The notes beneath the pieces are model-generated. The model was given only the letters and a program-made list of their open reading frames with translations, was not told the origin of the DNA and searched no databases. The translations under genes were made by a program, and so were the position numbers. A DNA stretch of 64,000 bases from Trichoplax adhaerens (taxonomy: Eukaryota > Animalia > Placozoa), in the NCBI RefSeq assembly GCF_000150275.1, contig NW_002060945.1, positions 1,003,872 to 1,067,871 on the forward strand, read 5' to 3'. Shown in pieces: positions 54,127 to 64,000 of this stretch. The first letter of the stretch is position 1; every line of letters starts with the position of its first letter.

Positions 54127-54689
54127 TTCCGTATTTTCGATTCGATAGGCTTATTTAACGAAATTAAGAACGAATCAATCAATCTTCCGATGTTACCTTC
54201 AATTTCAGATCAAGATATCAAAGAAACCAGCACAGTATTTACTCGATTGACTTAAGACTAAGCAACGATGGTAATATCATGTCATGGGATCAGTATATAT
54301 CGATCGGGGGAATTATCCAGATTTTTATTTACAAAATGCTGTCTCTAATGGAGGAAAAAACTGCTTCCTACTGCCACTTTGATGCTTGCTCAGCTACTAC
54401 GTTTGGTGCTAGGTGCTACTATACCGATACAGTACTCTCCAGTCATATCAACTTCTAGCAATAAACAGCGAAAAGGGTTCCTGTATCACTTTCTTGTAAC
54501 AGCAAGACCGCGAATTTTTGAAAATCACGTGATCGGCACCGGGTGGATGGGCGGACAGCCTCATCTCGTCCTAGTTCGGTTGCAAACACTTGGATTCATT
54601 ATGAGGTCAGTATGGGAAATGCTCGTCTCCGAATTTGACTTCCTTTTCTAAAGAAATACTATACGAAATCTCTTCCATTTTATTACTCT

Positions 54690-55540
54690 TTAGCTCCCAA
54701 GCTATACAGTACTACAGCCATTATGTAGTGATAGTCCAGAAATCGACTAAAAAGGTCGCAAAAGTAACAACAAACTTAAATAGATATTGCGTCTTGAGTC
54801 ATCGTACAACCATTTATAGCTCACAGCTGGTCGGATGTACAGTACTATACTACAGCAATGATGCAGTGATAGTCCAGAAATCGACTAAAAAAGGTCGCAA
54901 AAGTAGAAGAAACTTAAATAGATATTGCGTCTTGAGTCATCGTACAACCATTTATAGCTCACAGCTGGTCGGATGTACAGTACTATACTACAGCAATGAT
55001 GCAGTGATAGTCCAGAAATCGACTAAAAAAGGTCGCAAAAGTACAACAAACTTACATAGATATTGCGTCTTGAGTCATCGTACAACCATTTATAGCTCAC
55101 AGCTGGTCGGATGTACAGTACTATACTACAACTATTATGCAGTGATAGTCCAGAAATCGACTAAAAAAGGTCGCAAAAGTAGAAGAAACTTAAATAGATA
55201 TTGCGTCTTGAGTCATCGTACAACCATTTATAGCTCACAGCTGGTCGGATGTACATGTACTATACTACAGCTATTATGCAGCGATAGTCCAGAAATCGAC
55301 TAAAAAAGGTCGCAAAAGTACAACAAACTTAAATAGATATTGCGTCTTGAGTCATCGTACTACCATTTATAGCTCACAGCTGGTCGGATGTACAGTACTA
55401 TACTACAACTATTATGCAGTGATAGTCCAGAAATCGACTAAAAAAGGTCGCAAAAGTAGAAGAAACTTAAATAGATATTGCGTCTTGAGTCATCGTACTA
55501 CCATTTATAGCTCACAGCTGGTTGGATGTATAGTACTGTT
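54690..55540. repeat. 138-bp minisatellite, 6 copies plus a partial, with alternating (dimeric) variants
   Basis: Unit starts at 54728, 54866, 55004, 55142, 55281 and 55419. Confidence 0.97.
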
Positions 55541-57381
55541 ATTCCTTACAATTGGTTATATTGCGGTATTATACTGTAAGGTGATACCACCACGTGACTA
55601 CCTTATAGACTTGTTATTACCATGGATACCATACCGTAGCAGCTAATTCTGATGTCAATCGTAGACAATATACAGTAGTATACAAGTCTAGTTGCAGATA
55701 TGCGATGCAGCTGAAATCAACCGGTAAAATAATCGGCCTGCACATTTTTAGTATAGTGAACGACCGCTTTCCATAAAATTTTTAGGCTTTGCAAATGTAT
55801 ATTTTACCCAAAGATAGCTGACTGTAGCAGATAGTTAACAGGTAGTGTACAGGAGAGACTACTTAGCACTTTCTAACACTATAACAAAACAACACGAAAA
55901 CATTCGCCATTGACCTAAATAATGTGACAGTAGTTATCGCAAAATAGTTTAACTGTCGAGAATCTCCTTCATGTTCACATTAACCTTAATTCAATAGAGT
56001 CGCACCTTAATTAAAGGACTGTCAATAAATGTTGTCATAGCCATGGCTAATATAGTATTATAGAAGGAAATGTTGGCTTTTCCGTCAGTCCAATTATTGC
56101 TCAAGCAGAGATTAATATCTTGTGATTTTAAACTTAGGGTAGTATCTTAACTACGAGAAAGATGTAAACCAGAGTCCTCCAATGGAGCGAAAACGCAATT
56201 CGAACCCGATCAAATTGGTCATTTTCTAACCCGAAATGAGTACAATCGCGATAAAAACACTGTATCACCACAGAGATTCTTAACCCGAATCCCGCCCTCG
56301 AGTCAGGTTCAAGTCGGGTTTCGGATTGACTTTGCAGGATACTGATGTGAATCTTTCAAATGAAAGCATGATCTACAATATGGGATGATGTTGATGGCTC
56401 TTATCCTTCTAAGCTACCTCACATAATCGAGACTGTTGCATTTTTTTTTTTCAATGCCATCACTCAATCTGCAACTTACTATATCAATTCAATATTGTCA
56501 GGAAAAATAAGTACTAAAAAGAAAACAGTCCTTTGATTCCGTGAATGACAGCTATAGACTCCCTCTACAACAACAATATAGTACGGTAGTTATCCCATGC
56601 TTCAGGGCTAGCATTGGGCTGCGCTGTTTACTTGCATGGCCTGATAGAATCGTTGGAGAAATGCCTTTTCCTTATGAACGCTACGTAGCATAAGTACAAA
56701 CTTGGGAGTTTCTACTATCTACTTTCGATACTATTGTTGGTAAATCAACCAACAAATGATGCAGTTCCGTAAACAACTCGAGATTATTCTAAGGTGGACT
56801 TTAAATCTTCAACACGTTGTGTATGTAACATGCATTATGCAGCGGACTCAAATTGAAGAACTGATATAGCAGTTCAACTACATGATCGGTATGAAAACTT
56901 CCTAGGAAGAAAAAAAGGGGTGCTACCCATGATGTTCGCATGGCAGGTGTGGTAAATGCTAACCAAATCAAATAATTTACTACTATATTCAGTACTGTAC
57001 AACATAAGAGTTTGATCTTTATAACATCGTATCAGGCCTCCATGTCCACTCCACCCTCTTAGTATCAATTGCTGTATTTCAATTCTAAACTCTATTCCTG
57101 GACTACAATCCTATCCATTCGTTAAATAAATAAATAATTCGGAAACGGCGTTCTATTTCTAAGTATTCAATCATAAATTGTATTCGATACATATACTCGC
57201 ACATATAATAATCTTCGACGTAGAATAAAATACTTAAATTGAAATACGCGTAAAAGAAATCGTACTGTGGAAAAACGAAGCGTAACTTTCCAAACTGGAT
57301 TGTTATATTCAGTACTGTGGTATACGTAACAACTTATAAGTATCAAATTATTCCATCCTTAAAAAAAAGCTGGTCACGAAA

Positions 57382-60300
57382 TTGGAAAATCGATTAAAAA
57401 GGGATCTAGTTATGTCAAACGCCTCATATGTCGATAAGGATGTCAATCTAAACTACCTTTATGATGAGGTACATATTTTACAAGTCTGGCAGAGCTATAT
57501 TTTACGGGAACTGCAACAGGTGCGATTTTACGTTGGTCACACAGTTGATGGCACTTCACAAGATGGTACCTTGTCGCATTTATTGGATAACATGTCTCTA
57601 TCTGGAAGAAGCGGTGCGTTATTAGTCACTAGCGATGGTCAATTATATCAATGTGCTGATTATTCTATTTCTATCTGCGGCGCTGTGAACTACGAAAGTA
57701 ACATACAAGGCGGGTATGATGCAGTCACAAGCAATTTAGAAACCGTATTCAAACAAATAATAGAATGGAATAATTTGAATCCAAGTGCTTCCATCATCTC
57801 ACAAAAAATAATTTTTCCCCTTCAAACGCATTATAACCATTGGACCTTAGGTTGTCTCATACTAAACTTTTCAGGCCAATCTTTGCTCAATAAAGCTGAG
57901 ATAAGCGTTTATGATCCATTTGGTGAAGGTAGTATCCGCGATTCGGTAAAGGTTAAAATAGAAAATCTACTGAAAGAGGTCTTTAACTCCTCAAATGTTC
58001 AACTCGATATGAAGGATAATTCAGATCATATCAGACAACAATATGACGGTACCTCTTGTGGCGCTATTACTGCAGAGAATGGTAAAGACTTGTTGAACGG
58101 CGGTAATGAACGATTACAAAAGCAATACTGCAATCATACATCGAGCAATGATCTTCGCTTGCGACATTTGAAAGACGTCAGTACTCCTCAATTTGCTCAA
58201 AGGCAATGGCAAGCACAATATAGTGATATAAAAGGCGATAAAGAAATCCAAAACAAAGAACAAGTCAAGAAATCTTTGATAAAATGGATTCAAAATCTAC
58301 AGGTCGAAGATAAATATCAAGTAAAGATGTCATTCAGAGCTTTATACAACATTAGTAAAGAAATGATGAAAGATAAAGGAGAAAACCTGTTTAAAAGATT
58401 AGCTGTCTTACGGAAGAAAGAAAGGGAGAAACCGAATAAAAAAAATCAAAAAGAGTCAGGAAATGGCGAGACGAAAACACTAAATCAATCAGGTTTAACT
58501 ACCGCAGAAATAAACGAGATAGAAAAATACCTTCCCATACCATTCGGTAATCCGGGCCAACTTGATGCTTTATCTCAAACTGGTGTAGACCCTGCCAGAT
58601 TGATATTGACCAATTTAAAAAAGTTTTTTAATAATCATAAAGAATCACTAGTTCAAGCTAATATTTATAGTTCAATTCTGGACGGCGCCAATCAATGGCA
58701 AGAAGGTAGCAGAAAATTTCTTGAGGATTTCTCCAAAACGTACGAAAATTACAAAAACGCAGGTGTTGCATCCGCCAAAGGAACTGACCATCAAACCAGA
58801 CAATTAAAATTAAAACTATTCTCTTTCCCATCGCTAAATTCACTATTTCAGGATTGTGGCTGCTCTAATGCAAGCTGTATTCAAATAGAAAATGATATCA
58901 CTACGATAAAGTCAGATGATGAAACTGCGATTAATCTTCTACGCAAACAGATTATTCTTGAACTAGAAGACGACATAGCCGGTCTTGGACAATTGGTTTA
59001 CACCGATAGTGATTATCAAACTGGTCTTAAAGAACTGTTAGATGGGAAAATCATTGCACAAGCCCAAATGTTCTCTCTAATCTTGAGTCGAAAAGTGACA
59101 GACTTGCTCGTTAAGAGTATCGATATATATTACCAAAGACAAATTGGAACAAAACTACATCCCCCTTCACAAACAGGGCAAGCTGGGGCACACTTAGAAG
59201 AAAACGCGCAAGCCTACTTTTTAGCATTCATGATTACCGGCACTGTAGATCCTATTTTAGAACGAGATGATTATGACAGTTTAACACTGCAGGCCGCCCC
59301 CCAAGGCTTTAATACAGATGATTTTGTTGTTACTTTTGGAAAAGAAAGTGAAGGAAATAGATCCCGTCTCCTATGCCAAGTTAAACGTTCCTTAAAGAAT
59401 GGTCTTGGGAAAGCAATCAGCCAGGCTTGGGAGGATTTTGACAAGCCAAAAAAATTTAACCCCAAAAGAGACTATATTGTATTTGTGACCGAAACGCACT
59501 CAGGATTAGATCATCTAAAACAAATGATAAGCAGCGCTCATTCATCGAGCGACGATGTAAATCACTTTCGCAATAGCATTTTTGGAGAAGTCGAGAAAGC
59601 ATATAGTAATATTCATGACATTATCTTAGAAGAGGCATGCATAGATAGGCATGACGGTCAGATTAATCAAAAAGTGTTCAATTTCTTACTAAGAGTAAAA
59701 ATTTTAGAATTTACCCAAGGTCATATAAGTAATATCAAAACTATAATAGGCAATTACAAAAATTGCAATACAGATGAAGCCCTAAAAACGTGGAACTCAC
59801 TGTGTAAAGAAGTCGCCAAAGATAACGAAAGGGCTGGAATAATCACTCGCGAGCCCTTACCGGAACGCTATGAAAAACTCTTCGCTAAAATACAAAACGA
59901 CCCTATATCAGACATAGATTTATTTGGAGAAGAAAACTTTCCACCAGTAGATGATTATTTTACCGGCAGACAAAAGGACTTAATAAAAATGAAAGAGAAG
60001 CTATTCTCTCCAGATCCTAAAAAAAAGGAAGAAGAGAAAAAATTGCTCACCCTTCTAGGTTTAGGTGGAGTCGGAAAAACTTATTTAGCGCTGAAATTTC
60101 TTCATAACGCCAAAGACCACCACGAAAGCATAAAATGTAGACTATTTTTTAACGCCGACGATGAGGAAACTTTAACCAATTCATACATTGAATTGGCTCG
60201 TCATCTAAATATTCTATCAGGAAAGTTGCAAATAGTAAGTCAAATCAGGAAAGTCAAAGGATGGCTTTGTAATAATACAGGCTGGATCATTTTATTCGAT

Positions 60301-62151
60301 AATGCAACAATGAAATATAAAGACCTCATTAAATACATACCTCAAAAGGGAGGGTATATTGTTATCACAACACGCTGCGATAGCTTTGATGTCAACAAAA
60401 TCCAAATTGATATAATGACAATAGAGGATTCCATCGAACTACTGGAGAAGGAAATAGGAGATTTCGAAAATGTCCTTGAAATGAATAAAGATGAACTCAA
60501 TGAACTAGTTCAATTACTTGACTGTTTACCTTTAGCACTTGTTCAAGCAGCAGGCTATATTAAATTTAAATACATGAAAATCAGAGCATATATCAACTTA
60601 TATAAAGAGAACTATGAGAAGCGAAAAGAAATGCTGGAATTTAATACCCCGGAACGCCCTAATCAACATATCCCAGTTTATCTCACTTGGGATATGAGTT
60701 TCAATGTAATTAAAAACACAGACTATGCTGAAAATATTATAACACTGTGTGCCTATCTGTCACCTAATGGTATCCACGAATCACTCTTGCTTCCTCTAAC
60801 AGAGGGAAATCACAAAGCTCTAGATGAAGTATTAAAGACTCTATTCAGTCTATCATTGGTTAAAAGAATAGGATATGAAGTAATTAGCATTCACAAAGTT
60901 TTACAAGAGGTGATTCAAGTCAAACAAAGGCAAGACGAAAAACATAAGCAATGGATCGAGAAAGCAATAGATATTCTTGCCGAGAAATTCAAATGGGACA
61001 GAAACAAAAAGGACTCTATCGATTTAGCTAAAAGTTTAATTGTCCACATTACATGCGCCTTAGATCTGGCCAAAGAAGCTAATCTTAATTCTAATAAAAT
61101 AACGTTTTTATTACATAGAATTGGTGTCTACTATTTGGATATCGAAAGCCTAAACTCACTGGCTGAGGGCTATTTAAGGCGTTCGTTAGAGGGAAATACT
61201 GGCGACAGCGATATTAGGAAAAGAACATATCGACAACTATTTAAGTGTCTAATTCGTGCAGAAAATTATACTGAAGCAAAAGAAATACTTGAAATAATTT
61301 TACCGGCAGACGAAAAAAATTATTCAATAGATGATCACTGCAATTTGGCTCTCTTATTAATGAATTCCAAAGGCGTACTAGTTGTCAAAGCTATCATTGG
61401 ATACTTCACTTTATCGCCATCAAGGCATGGATCAGTCGAGATCTATTCGGGACAGAAAAAGCGAGAACATTTAAAGGAAGCGCAAAAGCAACTAGGCGAG
61501 GCACGAAAAAAGATTGAAGAAAATAACAGTCATCAAAATGGGGCGGTACATGCCAAGGTACTTCATTACTCAGGCCTCTGTTTATATAAACAGAAGCAGT
61601 ATAATGAAGCAAAAAGTTTTTTTGACAATTCCTTGAAACTAAAACGCGATTATTACAATGAAGATCACTTTGAAATTGCTCGAACCCATCATGAAATTGG
61701 GCGTTGTTACTATATACAAAAGCAGTATGAAAACTCTATAAAAGAATTCGACGAAGCTCTTAGAATCAGGCGAAAATATTATAATAGTACGCAAACATTA
61801 TCCACTTTAATTTATTTAGCTAAGTCATATAAGAACACCGGTGAAGTAGAAAAGCGTAAACTGGCAATAACGCTATTAGAGGAAGGACTCAAAATTCAAG
61901 AGAGATTAAAGCTTTCGCTAGATATTACATTGATATTGCTTGCAAAAATTTCTCTTGATTTAAATAGAAGAGAGGATTGTATCCGTTACATTGAAAGAAT
62001 AAGCAATAAAAGTAAATTATCTAGGGAACTCAAGTCCGTTGGCGAAACCGACGTTATTAATTTTTCTAAACAAGAACCCAAACTCTCAACTGAAGAAGCC
62101 TTAACTGACAACTCCGAAAACACGGACAGTGTAGAAATATCCGATGATTAA
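57382..62151 (+). CDS. Intronless multidomain STAND protein: CE-clan/Ulp1-like protease + PD-(D/E)xK nuclease-like domain + NB-ARC NTPase + TPR repeats (first ATG at 57412)
   Basis: HWTL (H153), YDP (D178), QQYDGTSCG (Q220/C226); TDD...LLCQVK (aa 645-668); FTGR, Walker A GLGGVGKT (893-900), Walker B WIILFDNA, IVITTR, LPLALVQAAGYI, IHKVLQ; C-terminal kinesin-light-chain-type TPRs. Confidence 0.88.
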   Translation: MENRLKRDLVMSNASYVDKDVNLNYLYDEVHILQVWQSYILRELQQVRFYVGHTVDGTSQDGTLSHLLDNMSLSGRSGALLVTSDGQLYQCADYSISICGAVNYESNIQGGYDAVTSNLETVFKQIIEWNNLNPSASIISQKIIFPLQTHYNHWTLGCLILNFSGQSLLNKAEISVYDPFGEGSIRDSVKVKIENLLKEVFNSSNVQLDMKDNSDHIRQQYDGTSCGAITAENGKDLLNGGNERLQKQYCNHTSSNDLRLRHLKDVSTPQFAQRQWQAQYSDIKGDKEIQNKEQVKKSLIKWIQNLQVEDKYQVKMSFRALYNISKEMMKDKGENLFKRLAVLRKKEREKPNKKNQKESGNGETKTLNQSGLTTAEINEIEKYLPIPFGNPGQLDALSQTGVDPARLILTNLKKFFNNHKESLVQANIYSSILDGANQWQEGSRKFLEDFSKTYENYKNAGVASAKGTDHQTRQLKLKLFSFPSLNSLFQDCGCSNASCIQIENDITTIKSDDETAINLLRKQIILELEDDIAGLGQLVYTDSDYQTGLKELLDGKIIAQAQMFSLILSRKVTDLLVKSIDIYYQRQIGTKLHPPSQTGQAGAHLEENAQAYFLAFMITGTVDPILERDDYDSLTLQAAPQGFNTDDFVVTFGKESEGNRSRLLCQVKRSLKNGLGKAISQAWEDFDKPKKFNPKRDYIVFVTETHSGLDHLKQMISSAHSSSDDVNHFRNSIFGEVEKAYSNIHDIILEEACIDRHDGQINQKVFNFLLRVKILEFTQGHISNIKTIIGNYKNCNTDEALKTWNSLCKEVAKDNERAGIITREPLPERYEKLFAKIQNDPISDIDLFGEENFPPVDDYFTGRQKDLIKMKEKLFSPDPKKKEEEKKLLTLLGLGGVGKTYLALKFLHNAKDHHESIKCRLFFNADDEETLTNSYIELARHLNILSGKLQIVSQIRKVKGWLCNNTGWIILFDNATMKYKDLIKYIPQKGGYIVITTRCDSFDVNKIQIDIMTIEDSIELLEKEIGDFENVLEMNKDELNELVQLLDCLPLALVQAAGYIKFKYMKIRAYINLYKENYEKRKEMLEFNTPERPNQHIPVYLTWDMSFNVIKNTDYAENIITLCAYLSPNGIHESLLLPLTEGNHKALDEVLKTLFSLSLVKRIGYEVISIHKVLQEVIQVKQRQDEKHKQWIEKAIDILAEKFKWDRNKKDSIDLAKSLIVHITCALDLAKEANLNSNKITFLLHRIGVYYLDIESLNSLAEGYLRRSLEGNTGDSDIRKRTYRQLFKCLIRAENYTEAKEILEIILPADEKNYSIDDHCNLALLLMNSKGVLVVKAIIGYFTLSPSRHGSVEIYSGQKKREHLKEAQKQLGEARKKIEENNSHQNGAVHAKVLHYSGLCLYKQKQYNEAKSFFDNSLKLKRDYYNEDHFEIARTHHEIGRCYYIQKQYENSIKEFDEALRIRRKYYNSTQTLSTLIYLAKSYKNTGEVEKRKLAITLLEEGLKIQERLKLSLDITLILLAKISLDLNRREDCIRYIERISNKSKLSRELKSVGETDVINFSKQEPKLSTEEALTDNSENTDSVEISDD

Positions 62152-64000
62152 CGTATTTAGACGCGATCATCTGCATACCCTGGAAAAAAATATTACAAAA
62201 AGACCTTCAATTTCACTCCATCCAATAAAATAACAGACGCAGTCGTTGCCATAATTTCTCAATGATCAACTAATTTACGTAATTTAAAATAGAACCTTAG
62301 TCTGAAAAGATGACGCGCTACAACCTATTAATAGGTACACTTAATTTAAATCAAGCTAGCACCGTAAGGAAATTTTTTCACTATCCTATCTGAAGACTAG
62401 CATGGCAAGTTTAGAATAAGAATATAGAACAGAAAAAAAGTGATACAACACTAACCCATCACTATTCAGATATTTCGGACAATTTTTCTCCTACACTTAT
62501 TTTACATTTGATCGTTATCATTACAATAAGCATATTCCGACGGTATAGTTTGTAATTGGTTCTATGACAAGAATTTGTGATCTATATCTTTTCGGTTCCC
62601 AACGCTATACAAGTCGATGACTACAATTTATATATATAGACTGTCGTACTATCATACTATGCTATCCTTTACAAGCACTATTGCAACTACTGGTAAATAC
62701 ATAACACTTAAGATTTTCTTCTTTTAGTCAAGTTTACAATACTTTAAATAAACTGAAAATGAATAGACAAGTAAATGAAATAATGATGTCAGTTCTAGAA
62801 TATACTTGTATGTTTTTTCTCGGTGTCGTTGTCACACTATTAAGCTATGTGTATCAACTGTTATTAGTGATCACGCAATATTTGATCAAGTAATCATTCC
62901 AAAGAAACGTTTGGGTGCATATCAAGCCCGGTCGTAGAGAGATTTAGCATCTTTAGCTTTTGCTTGTACAAGACAAGAGTTAATTATATCTTCGATCTAC
63001 ATAAGATGCGAGCTCCAAAATCCAGCGTTCTAGGACTATCAGTAGCGAAACATATAAACCGGTGCTAAGTGGAAGAACCTTTTATTTTATTATTCTTTAA
63101 AAGAAATGATCTCATATTTAATCATATTATTATCATCACTTATAAAAATGTAGTGAATAGGCTTGTCATAGAACTATAAGATAGTTATCACTAGATAACT
63201 TATCTTAAAATTTGCTGATAGCAATTTTATCTACGATTTTATTCATCAGTAATGTTAGCTTGGTGTTTTGTAGCTAAACTATAAATTCGTTGATATTTCA
63301 ATAAATTTGGATCTTATAGTTTAATCTGATTAGAGACATATGTCAACCATGAGTATATCTTCTGAGATAGGGATAATCAGCACAGTATTTAGAGTAGCAT
63401 AGAGACAGATGCCAGGAAGTGTACAATAGGTGCAGATTTGTTATTTTGATATCGTTGCAAACTTCAATTTGTAACAGGGCCATATTGGTTTAATGCCTAA
63501 CAGATATTGGATTGATTAAGTGAGTGAAATAGCTGTCGTAGCAAATTTAATGATAAAGGCAGGCTAATTGGATAAAATTGAAATATTTCACAACCGCGCT
63601 GGAAAGTATCCCTGCTAACTCCCAGCGGATATCATAGAGTTCTTGCTATCTCGTCCATCAGTTAGCGGCTCCGTAAATTGACCACAGACGCTAACTCAGT
63701 CAAGTCCGGTAATATTATGTGTACAGTAGTCTAGTGCGACGTCTGGAGACAGGGACAAGGATTGCAATATATGGAATAATACCTGAGTTCTTAGAATCAC
63801 AATCAATGGTAACTAGGGCAGTTCTTGTAAATGCAATACTGATAGAACCTTATCCTTCTAAATATTATTGACTTCATTAATAAATGTAATTTAGTATATC
63901 TCATTAGAAGCAAAACGTTCATGTTGATGAATTAATTTATAAATACAATACTGATTTGTCATGGAACACCTTTTCATTTTTTGCTACCATAAAGTTGGAT

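Follow-up and report, generated by a model that had tools for sequence, protein, structure and literature searches.

SeAvs3 and SeAvs7 are prokaryotic receptors with a Cap4-STAND-TPR layout, in which a phage protein bound to the TPR region relieves autoinhibition, the nucleoside triphosphatase (NTPase) forms a tetramer and the Cap4 deoxyribonuclease becomes active (PMC13581612). Here we describe a gene of the placozoan Trichoplax adhaerens, at 57382-62151 of a 64,000-nucleotide window (positions 1,003,872 to 1,067,871 of contig NW_002060945.1), that encodes a STAND receptor with a predicted Cap4-type nuclease and an added CE-clan cysteine protease on an NB-ARC chassis, in an animal. As in Avs3 and Avs7 (SeAvs3, 8DGC), the nuclease stands directly before the STAND NTPase and a TPR-like sensor in a single polypeptide, and its model superposes on Avs3 with a Z of 13.2 over 206 residues; the same logic, in which ligand-driven oligomerisation assembles the nuclease, would be expected. 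It differs from them in its NTPase, which is of the NB-ARC/AP-ATPase type with a DUF7779-like region and is nearest to FxSxx-type NB-ARC-TPR proteins, in the extra protease and 260-amino-acid linker at its front, and in its host.

The protease has precedents of its own. RickCE of Rickettsia bellii and OtDUB of Orientia tsutsugamushi cleave ubiquitin and NEDD8, and RavZ deconjugates Atg8. The Trichoplax domain shares with RickCE and OtDUB a profile-level homology, the fold and aligned catalytic motifs, but those proteins are secreted bacterial effectors with other C-terminal modules, whereas here the domain heads a host-encoded STAND receptor. A PD-(D/E)xK nuclease and a CE-clan deubiquitinase (DUB) also occur together in one large protein in Wolbachia CidB and in the nuclease and DUB toxins of Rickettsiales. 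In CifB, however, tandem PD-(D/E)xK domains are N-terminal to the DUB, a cognate CifA partner belongs to the system and there is no STAND or TPR, while the Trichoplax protein has one Cap4-like nuclease, C-terminal to its protease; the nuclease domains of CidB (ND1-ND2) match it only at a Foldseek probability of 0.1-0.2.

With bacterial and fungal NB-ARC-TPR proteins, among them fungal NLRs that have enzymatic N-termini, the gene shares an NB-ARC-DUF7779-TPR module (22-27% identity across roughly 85% of the C-terminal half) and a common principle, that of exchangeable effectors at the N-terminus, but the N-termini of these relatives are XRE-HTH, TIR or ParA-like. Canonical animal NLRs have a death-fold-NACHT-LRR architecture; the Trichoplax protein has NB-ARC, TPR and no death-fold match. 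The published catalogue of placozoan NLRs (Kamm et al. 2019, PMC6321704, Dataset S3D) lists the orthologue of Trichoplax sp. H2, TrispH2_002505, as NB-ARC plus TPR with an empty effector column, and gives CARD, Death-like or DD effectors for the other NLRs that it contains; the protease, the nuclease and the bacterial kinship of TrispH2_002505 are not described there. An earlier note on this DNA, made from the sequence alone, did not recognise the four-domain combination as one described in animals. A full-text literature search found no description of a nuclease- or protease-armed NLR in placozoans, but the orthologue itself had already been catalogued. A published list of 12 proposed bacterial transfers into T. 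adhaerens does not include the gene (PMC3641634). The novelty lies in recognising two enzymatic domains at the N-terminus, an Avs-like logic and full-length bacterial kin.

One uninterrupted frame encodes four modules

The interval is a single open reading frame (ORF) of 1589 codons on the plus strand, with a mechanical TTG start and no internal stop. Such a frame is far beyond chance, because the DNA has about 35% G+C and the longest other ORF of the window reaches at most 306 amino acids. The first ATG, at 57412, gives a protein of 1579 amino acids and is also the start of the H2 orthologue (P0001). We count residues from this ATG; numbers based on the TTG are higher by 10.

The protease (domain A) contains the motifs NHWTLG (142-147), VYDPFG (166-171) and RQQYDGTSCG (208-217), in which the catalytic His143, Asp168 and Cys216 and the oxyanion-hole Gln209/210 are intact and in CE-clan order. 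In an alignment of 19 short family members, P136, H143 and W144 are invariant, and Q209, Q210, D212 and G217, which belong to the signature QQxDxSCGAITAENGK, are nearly so. The AlphaFold2 model of the domain has a pLDDT of 85, and its top Foldseek matches in the PDB are all CE-clan proteins: RavZ first, then OtDUB, the DUB domain of CidB, RickCE, SseL and Ulp1/SENP (best E 3.7e-8; CidB DUB domain, 7FIU, E 5.8e-6). A profile of the family recovered RickCE (E 3.6e-7) and OtDUB (0.002), with the HW and QQxDxxCG segments aligned. Pfam's Peptidase_C48 model (PF02902) gave 18.6 bits for domain A alone, under the cutoff of 20.7, and no match for the whole protein; two family members, P0015 (25.3 bits) and P0022 (21.2 bits), pass it. 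The linker that follows had no match in Pfam, and an Atlas search with it gave nothing usable; in a library search it could be aligned only within the full-length clade described below (P0001, P0002, P0008 and P0009).

The nuclease (domain B) has intact motifs too: E596, TDD at 635-637 and QVK at 656-658. Among 24 homologues, G589, G592, E596, P614, Q627, D636, D637, Q656, D675, F682 and D687 are invariant columns and K658 is near-invariant. Its AlphaFold2 model (pLDDT 81) has LmuA, Cap4, Avs3 (8DGC) and HamA as top Foldseek matches, at a probability of 1.0. VIA-align superposed model residues 7-276 on Cap4, LmuA and Avs3 with Z values of 13.2-14.1 over 204-207 residues (the five best well-superposed structures), against 7.6 or less for other restriction enzymes. 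The predicted fold includes the restriction-endonuclease core and also the helical extension that Cap4, LmuA and the N-terminal domain of Avs3 have in common. About 100 of the 281 proteins that we retrieved carry this domain (101 rows in the nuclease tree), mostly as the very first domain of proteins with about 1175 or about 1700 amino acids, some of which have nSTAND-type NTPases. A homodimer prediction for the domain returned a score of 0.00, a 'no answer' that counts neither way.

The C-terminal half is a STAND NTPase followed by TPR. Pfam recognises NB-ARC (PF00931, 28.0 bits against a cutoff of 23.5), with DUF7779 below threshold, and the motifs GLGGVGKT, ILFDNA, ITTR, CLPLAL and SIHKVLQ (MHD-like) are present and invariant across five full-length homologues. 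TPR_12 (5e-19), TPR_2, TPR_1 and TPR_19 all exceed their Pfam cutoffs. The NCBIfam model FxSxx_TPR (NF040586) matched with an E of 1e-40, though its 140 bits are far under the model cutoff of 300. No death-fold family of Pfam matched the protein, the NTPase is NB-ARC and not NACHT, and the sensor is TPR and not LRR. The nearest named relatives of this half come from Planctomycetaceae, Streptomyces and other actinomycetes, Ktedonobacter and fungi, and none of those named is from another animal.

What the earlier note had read from the letters is confirmed by these results: the uninterrupted frame of 1589 codons, seen in the ORF list and the stop-free translation; the four modules, CE-clan protease, PD-(D/E)xK, NB-ARC and TPR, seen in motifs, Pfam and fold searches; and the two enzyme folds, which profile and structure searches recover as CE-clan/Ulp1-like and as a restriction-endonuclease fold of the Cap4/Avs3 type. 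The four residues that it had proposed to mutate (C226, D647, K668 and K899) were correctly chosen: in our numbering they correspond to the protease's catalytic C216, to D637 and K658 of the nuclease and to K889 of Walker A. Positions of all features are given in Table 1.

Table 1. Features of the locus, in coordinates of the window.
Feature	Position	Strand	Basis
Approximate transcribed region: 5' untranslated region of about 530 nt, ORF, short 3' untranslated region, no intron	56880..62250	+	RNA-library contigs
Coding sequence, 1579 aa and stop	57412..62151	+	ORF translation; start agrees with P0001
Domain A, CE-clan (Ulp1/C48-like, OtDUB/RickCE-like) cysteine protease, aa 1-310	57412..58341	+	AlphaFold2 model, Foldseek, family profile
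Domain A catalytic sites	His143 57838-57840; Asp168 57913-57915; Gln209/210 and Cys216 within 58033-58086	+	
Linker, aa 311-574, starting with a Lys/Glu-rich stretch	58342..59133	+	No recognisable family
Domain B, predicted Cap4/DUF4297-type PD-(D/E)xK nuclease, aa 575-835	59134..59916	+	AlphaFold2 model, Foldseek, VIA-align, motif conservation
Domain B motifs	Glu596 within 59167-59205; Asp636/637 within 59311-59331; Gln656-Val-Lys658 within 59368-59391	+	
NB-ARC-type STAND NTPase and winged-helix/DUF7779 region, aa ~860-1175	59989..60936	+	Pfam, NCBIfam, motifs
NTPase motifs	Walker A 60058-60081; Walker B 60289-60306; TTR 60364-60381; LPLAL 60523-60540; MHD-like His 60886-60906	+	
TPR sensor region, aa ~1200-1510, then acidic Ser-rich tail to 62148	61009..61941	+	Pfam
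AATAAA, possible polyadenylation signal, 73 nt 3' of the stop codon	62224..62229	+	Read from the sequence; contig coverage stops nearby

A full-length relative on a metagenome contig and a paralogue in Trichoplax

An exhaustive phmmer search of 1.84 billion cluster representatives gave 506 matches in all, dozens of them related to the protease part. The whole N-terminal architecture was found in only four representatives, all of which have NB-ARC and TPR as well: the H2 orthologue P0001 (TrispH2_002505; 92% identity over the N-terminal 860 residues and 99% over the C-terminal 725), P0002 (53%), P0008 (38%) and P0009 (35%). Together with the window protein they align end to end, and all catalytic and NTPase residues are invariant among the five. 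P0008 is collinear with the Trichoplax protein at 36-37% identity over 1715 residues, linker included, and is encoded on metagenome contig Ga0207695_10001398 (L006:1-25145). ORFs lie densely on both strands of this contig. Apart from P0008, NCBIfam and Pfam recognised on it only mobile-element and effector-like genes: transposases of the IS3, IS110 and rve types, a XerC-like recombinase, a KfrA_N plasmid protein, a fragment of a glycosyltransferase-88 (GT88, Legionella Lgt-like) and an RNase III-ankyrin fusion. These features mark the contig as bacterial, and it probably comes from a plasmid or island of a host-associated bacterium. Related forms also occur in metagenomes, and a scan of viral contigs yielded no relative. 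The combination is thus no animal peculiarity, and since a bacterium shares the whole four-part gene, the gene most likely moved by horizontal transfer.

Trichoplax has one paralogue, an intronless ORF of 986 amino acids (G000:C1390:402724-405444, minus strand; L003:4509-7469) with a Cap4-like nuclease (404659-405444), NB-ARC, DUF7779 and TPR, but lacking the protease. The nuclease domain of P0038, to which it is most closely related, shows 59% identity. In Trichoplax, the only further gene with an NTPase detectably close to that of the main gene is an intronless NB-ARC-TPR gene of 917 amino acids (G000:C1407:1058014-1058880; L020:1000-3753), which has no N-terminal effector domain.

Maximum-likelihood trees of the nuclease domain (101 rows) and of the NTPase (122 rows), neither of them rooted, are congruent, which indicates that the two modules evolved as one unit. 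Both contain a supported clade of 13 rows that splits into a nuclease-only subclade (the paralogue, P0038, P0052 and P0059) and a protease-bearing subclade of nine members, made up of the P0010/P0011 group, the pair P0008 and P0009, and P0002 as sister to the window protein and P0001. Within the full-length clade, the protease tree agrees with this topology. These trees place a single gain of the protease where the nine-member subclade begins.

In the Trichoplax genome the protease domain is single-copy. Elsewhere its family is present in a Rickettsiales metagenome-assembled genome and in Candidatus Anadelfobacter sociabilis, in both as the head of giant modular proteins, and of 301 genomes from the order to which Ca. 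Anadelfobacter belongs (Rickettsiales) 8 contain it, versus none of 400 other sampled genomes of the phylum. The nuclease domain had no match in those 301 genomes. A genome contig scan returned the protease in two Rickettsiales records and did not find the full four-part architecture.

Several family members have unlike partners. The protein of Ca. Anadelfobacter sociabilis (2148 amino acids; L005:867-7313) has, besides the protease, an AAA-ATPase_like domain and a nuclease match (PDDEXK_9) below threshold; it is another protease-NTPase-nuclease combination, in a Rickettsiales symbiont. P0018 (1988 amino acids) has the same protease and an NB-ARC-type NTPase and is placed elsewhere in both trees, for which reason protease-STAND fusion seems to have arisen more than once. 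P0020 (1451 amino acids) combines the protease with a DUF294/SidM-like nucleotidyltransferase and ankyrin repeats in an effector-like layout.

The gene is integrated and transcribed in Trichoplax

The gene is located inside a multi-megabase contig, and its H2 orthologue on an 855-kb contig of an independent assembly. The ORF has a G+C content of 36.0% (32% at third codon positions, GC3) and so matches the remainder of the window, at 34.6%. The stretch is contained, at least in part, in 20 of 22 listed public runs, which come from 8 studies and carry three coded organism names.

Transcription, which had been left to be checked, is supported by RNA-library contigs that cover the locus. They come from four runs, one of which (X12) is declared as metatranscriptomic RNA-seq and the other three of which we guess to be RNA. 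Between 56800 and 62700 these contigs fall within 56882-62169 and show no joints; no contig lies in 62316-62700, and depth is almost nil in 56800-56880. Such sharp coverage edges within one analysis serve as a silent-flank control, and together with the absence of joints they point to a transcript of about 5.3 kb that is intronless and has a 5' untranslated region of 530 nt. The AATAAA downstream of the stop codon is likely a chance match, as the DNA is rich in A+T. Two candidate features of the contigs were discarded. A two-base insertion at 59122 in one X12 contig, considered as a frameshift allele, is 7 nt from the contig end and is treated here as an alignment artefact. Loose ends of X2 contigs at 57370, 59903 and 62169 had looked like amplicon boundaries; their overlaps of 30 nt equal the assembler's k-1 and mark branch points of the assembly graph.

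We conclude that this is a real, chromosomally integrated and transcribed placozoan gene. Dozens of TPR matches in the Trichoplax genome lie inside uninterrupted frames of 1200-1600 amino acids, on many contigs. Trichoplax thus seems to have many very long intronless TPR or NLR-like genes, and the lack of introns is by itself no sign that the gene is foreign. Upstream in the window, a minisatellite at 54704-55668, in which a 274-nt reference copy repeats at a spacing of 138 nt in five registers that are mostly 93-97% identical, generates a mechanical ORF of 222 amino acids (54635-55303) whose Pfam matches are scattered and of low complexity.

The frame is intact in every source (the window, the H2 protein and the contigs of four runs), and the motifs are strictly conserved among proteins of 36-40% identity, both of which are evidence against decay. 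The window protein differs from P0001 at 75 amino acids, 66 of them between residues 100 and 850 (protease, linker and nuclease) and 9 in the NB-ARC/TPR half. The effector half may evolve faster, as this skew suggests, or else the haplotypes may be mosaic and recombinant.

A candidate sensor-executioner of bacterial design

On balance we regard it as fairly probable that the gene is a self-contained STAND/NLR-like receptor of bacterial (Avs-like) design at work in a placozoan. By analogy with Avs3 and Avs7, its core, the predicted Cap4-type PD-(D/E)xK nuclease, NB-ARC and TPR sensor, would form a cytosolic sensor-executioner. A ligand bound to the TPR region would release autoinhibition, the freed NB-ARC modules would oligomerise and thereby assemble the nuclease domains, and DNA cleavage by the assembled nuclease would either kill the infected cell or destroy foreign DNA. 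This core gained, in one subclade, an OtDUB/RickCE-like CE-clan isopeptidase and the 260-amino-acid linker at its N-terminus. The protease module probably strips ubiquitin or a ubiquitin-like modifier, for which a CE-clan domain would find obvious substrates in a eukaryotic cytoplasm, and could be a second output, or else serve for regulation or as a guard. That there are two enzymatic outputs, and whether ubiquitin or SUMO would be the substrate, we can only infer.

A number of results weigh against this reading. The nuclease region (residues 575-850) has no match in Pfam, NCBIfam or PADLOC, its profile gave only chance-level matches to PDB sequences, as did a PDB sequence search with the N-terminal 850 residues, and its assignment to the Cap4 type comes from a predicted fold and motif conservation. 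At an E of up to 1, PADLOC-DB returned no family, so that no curated Avs model matched. The first description of the gene as a candidate Avs-type system is right about the effector-STAND-TPR layout of Cap4-nuclease Avs, but the Avs models themselves are unmatched and the NTPase is of the NB-ARC/AP-ATPase type. The RNA evidence consists of assembled contigs, which give neither strand nor exact ends nor expression level. Purifying selection left no sign at the short range of strains: of the single-base differences between window and runs in the ORF, the 37 with the best support (18 further strain differences fall outside this set) comprise 31 nonsynonymous and 6 synonymous changes, where 79% nonsynonymous is the neutral expectation for the ORF (binomial p = 0.34). 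Since 31:6 is indistinguishable from neutral drift, the gene could be under relaxed constraint. The bacterial relative has its own ambiguities, too. The neighbours of the P0008 gene are eukaryote-targeting and effector-like (GT88/Lgt-like and RNase III-ankyrin), so that it does not sit in a recognisable defence island, and the gene has a G+C of 31.6% (GC3 20%) against 37.7% in its flanks.

Alternative explanations and the direction of transfer

The best-surviving alternative, although we hold it to be improbable, is a captured symbiont or pathogen effector, that is, a modular DUB and nuclease toxin like CifB of Wolbachia and other Rickettsiales that has no immune role and persists as a transcribed, decaying relic. 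The closeness of the protease to the Rickettsiales effectors RickCE and OtDUB and the enrichment of its family in that order would fit such an origin, as would the partners seen in the family, which are of effector type (SidM-like plus ankyrin in P0020, AAA-ATPase_like plus PDDEXK_9 in Ca. Anadelfobacter), the place of P0008 on a plasmid-like contig, rich in insertion sequences, where GT88 (Lgt-like) and RNase III-ankyrin genes are its neighbours, and strain variants that are compatible with neutrality. Trichoplax is known to host a rickettsial endosymbiont (PMC3641634). A decaying relic, however, is difficult to reconcile with a frame of 1579 codons that is intact in window, H2 protein and contigs of four runs, and with motifs that are all invariant among proteins whose identity to P0008, the reference of the alignment, is only 36-40%: invariance at this distance requires long-term purifying selection. 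The architecture speaks for the receptor as well. Nuclease-NB-ARC-TPR is the build of defence receptors and not of known secreted effectors, and it recurs, free of the protease, in a second intact Trichoplax gene. Finally, the predicted nuclease fold is that of Cap4, LmuA and Avs3 and not that of the CidB nuclease domains, which match it in Foldseek only at the low probability given above, and the domain order is opposite to that of CifB.

The gene is likely to have passed from a bacterium to a placozoan ancestor, because each of its modules has its diversity in bacteria. The reverse, a four-domain gene born in a eukaryote (placozoan or protist) and acquired by an intracellular bacterium, seems to us unlikely, a shade more so than the captured effector. 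It is kept in play by the unrooted tree and by the composition and neighbouring genes of the bacterial copy: the full-length clade splits into P0008 with P0009 and P0002 with Trichoplax, which carries no rooting information, and the P0008 gene is compositionally foreign to its contig and directly adjoins an IS3 transposase. Uptake of host genes is common in intracellular bacteria that carry ankyrin and Lgt-like genes, and the wider 25-row NTPase clade also includes fungal NLRs. Yet all three enzymatic and NTPase modules are broadly diverse in bacteria, where hundreds of Cap4-like domains head proteins of about 1175 and about 1700 amino acids, the protease family is found in Rickettsiales genomes, and NB-ARC-DUF7779-TPR proteins occur in Actinomycetota, Planctomycetota and Chloroflexota; among named matches, the combination appears in no other animal. 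Contamination, with bacterial DNA misjoined to a Trichoplax scaffold, is suggested by an intronless, bacterial-like ORF amid an intron-rich window and by the bacterial DNA that Trichoplax assemblies contain (PMC3641634), but is practically dismissed by the position of the gene in two independent assemblies, its host-like G+C, the absence of flanking bacterial genes, RNA contigs that continue from the 530-nt host-like 5' flank into the ORF, and its presence, at least in part, in nearly all listed runs.

Implications

Should the receptor reading be right, a complete prokaryote-style immune receptor is working, or at least persisting, in an animal genome, and the gene would join the small number of documented cases in which defence genes passed between bacteria and eukaryotes. 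As the protein is self-contained, its activity, autoinhibition and oligomerisation are amenable to ordinary expression and mutant assays. More tentatively, and with considerable doubt, a basal animal may use a bacterial-type single-chain receptor with enzymatic outputs, in which a Cap4 nuclease would execute the infected cell and a symbiont-type DUB, from the family of the effectors of Rickettsiales, to which the endosymbiont of Trichoplax itself belongs, would either arm the receptor or be what it guards against; Avs and animal NLRs would then be linked by direct transfer. The OtDUB/RickCE-like protease raises the question whether effector domains of intracellular bacteria were recruited into host receptors, or the reverse. 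For placozoans, the empty 'effector' entry of a catalogued NLR is now filled, and animal STAND receptors prove not to be restricted to death-fold adaptors.

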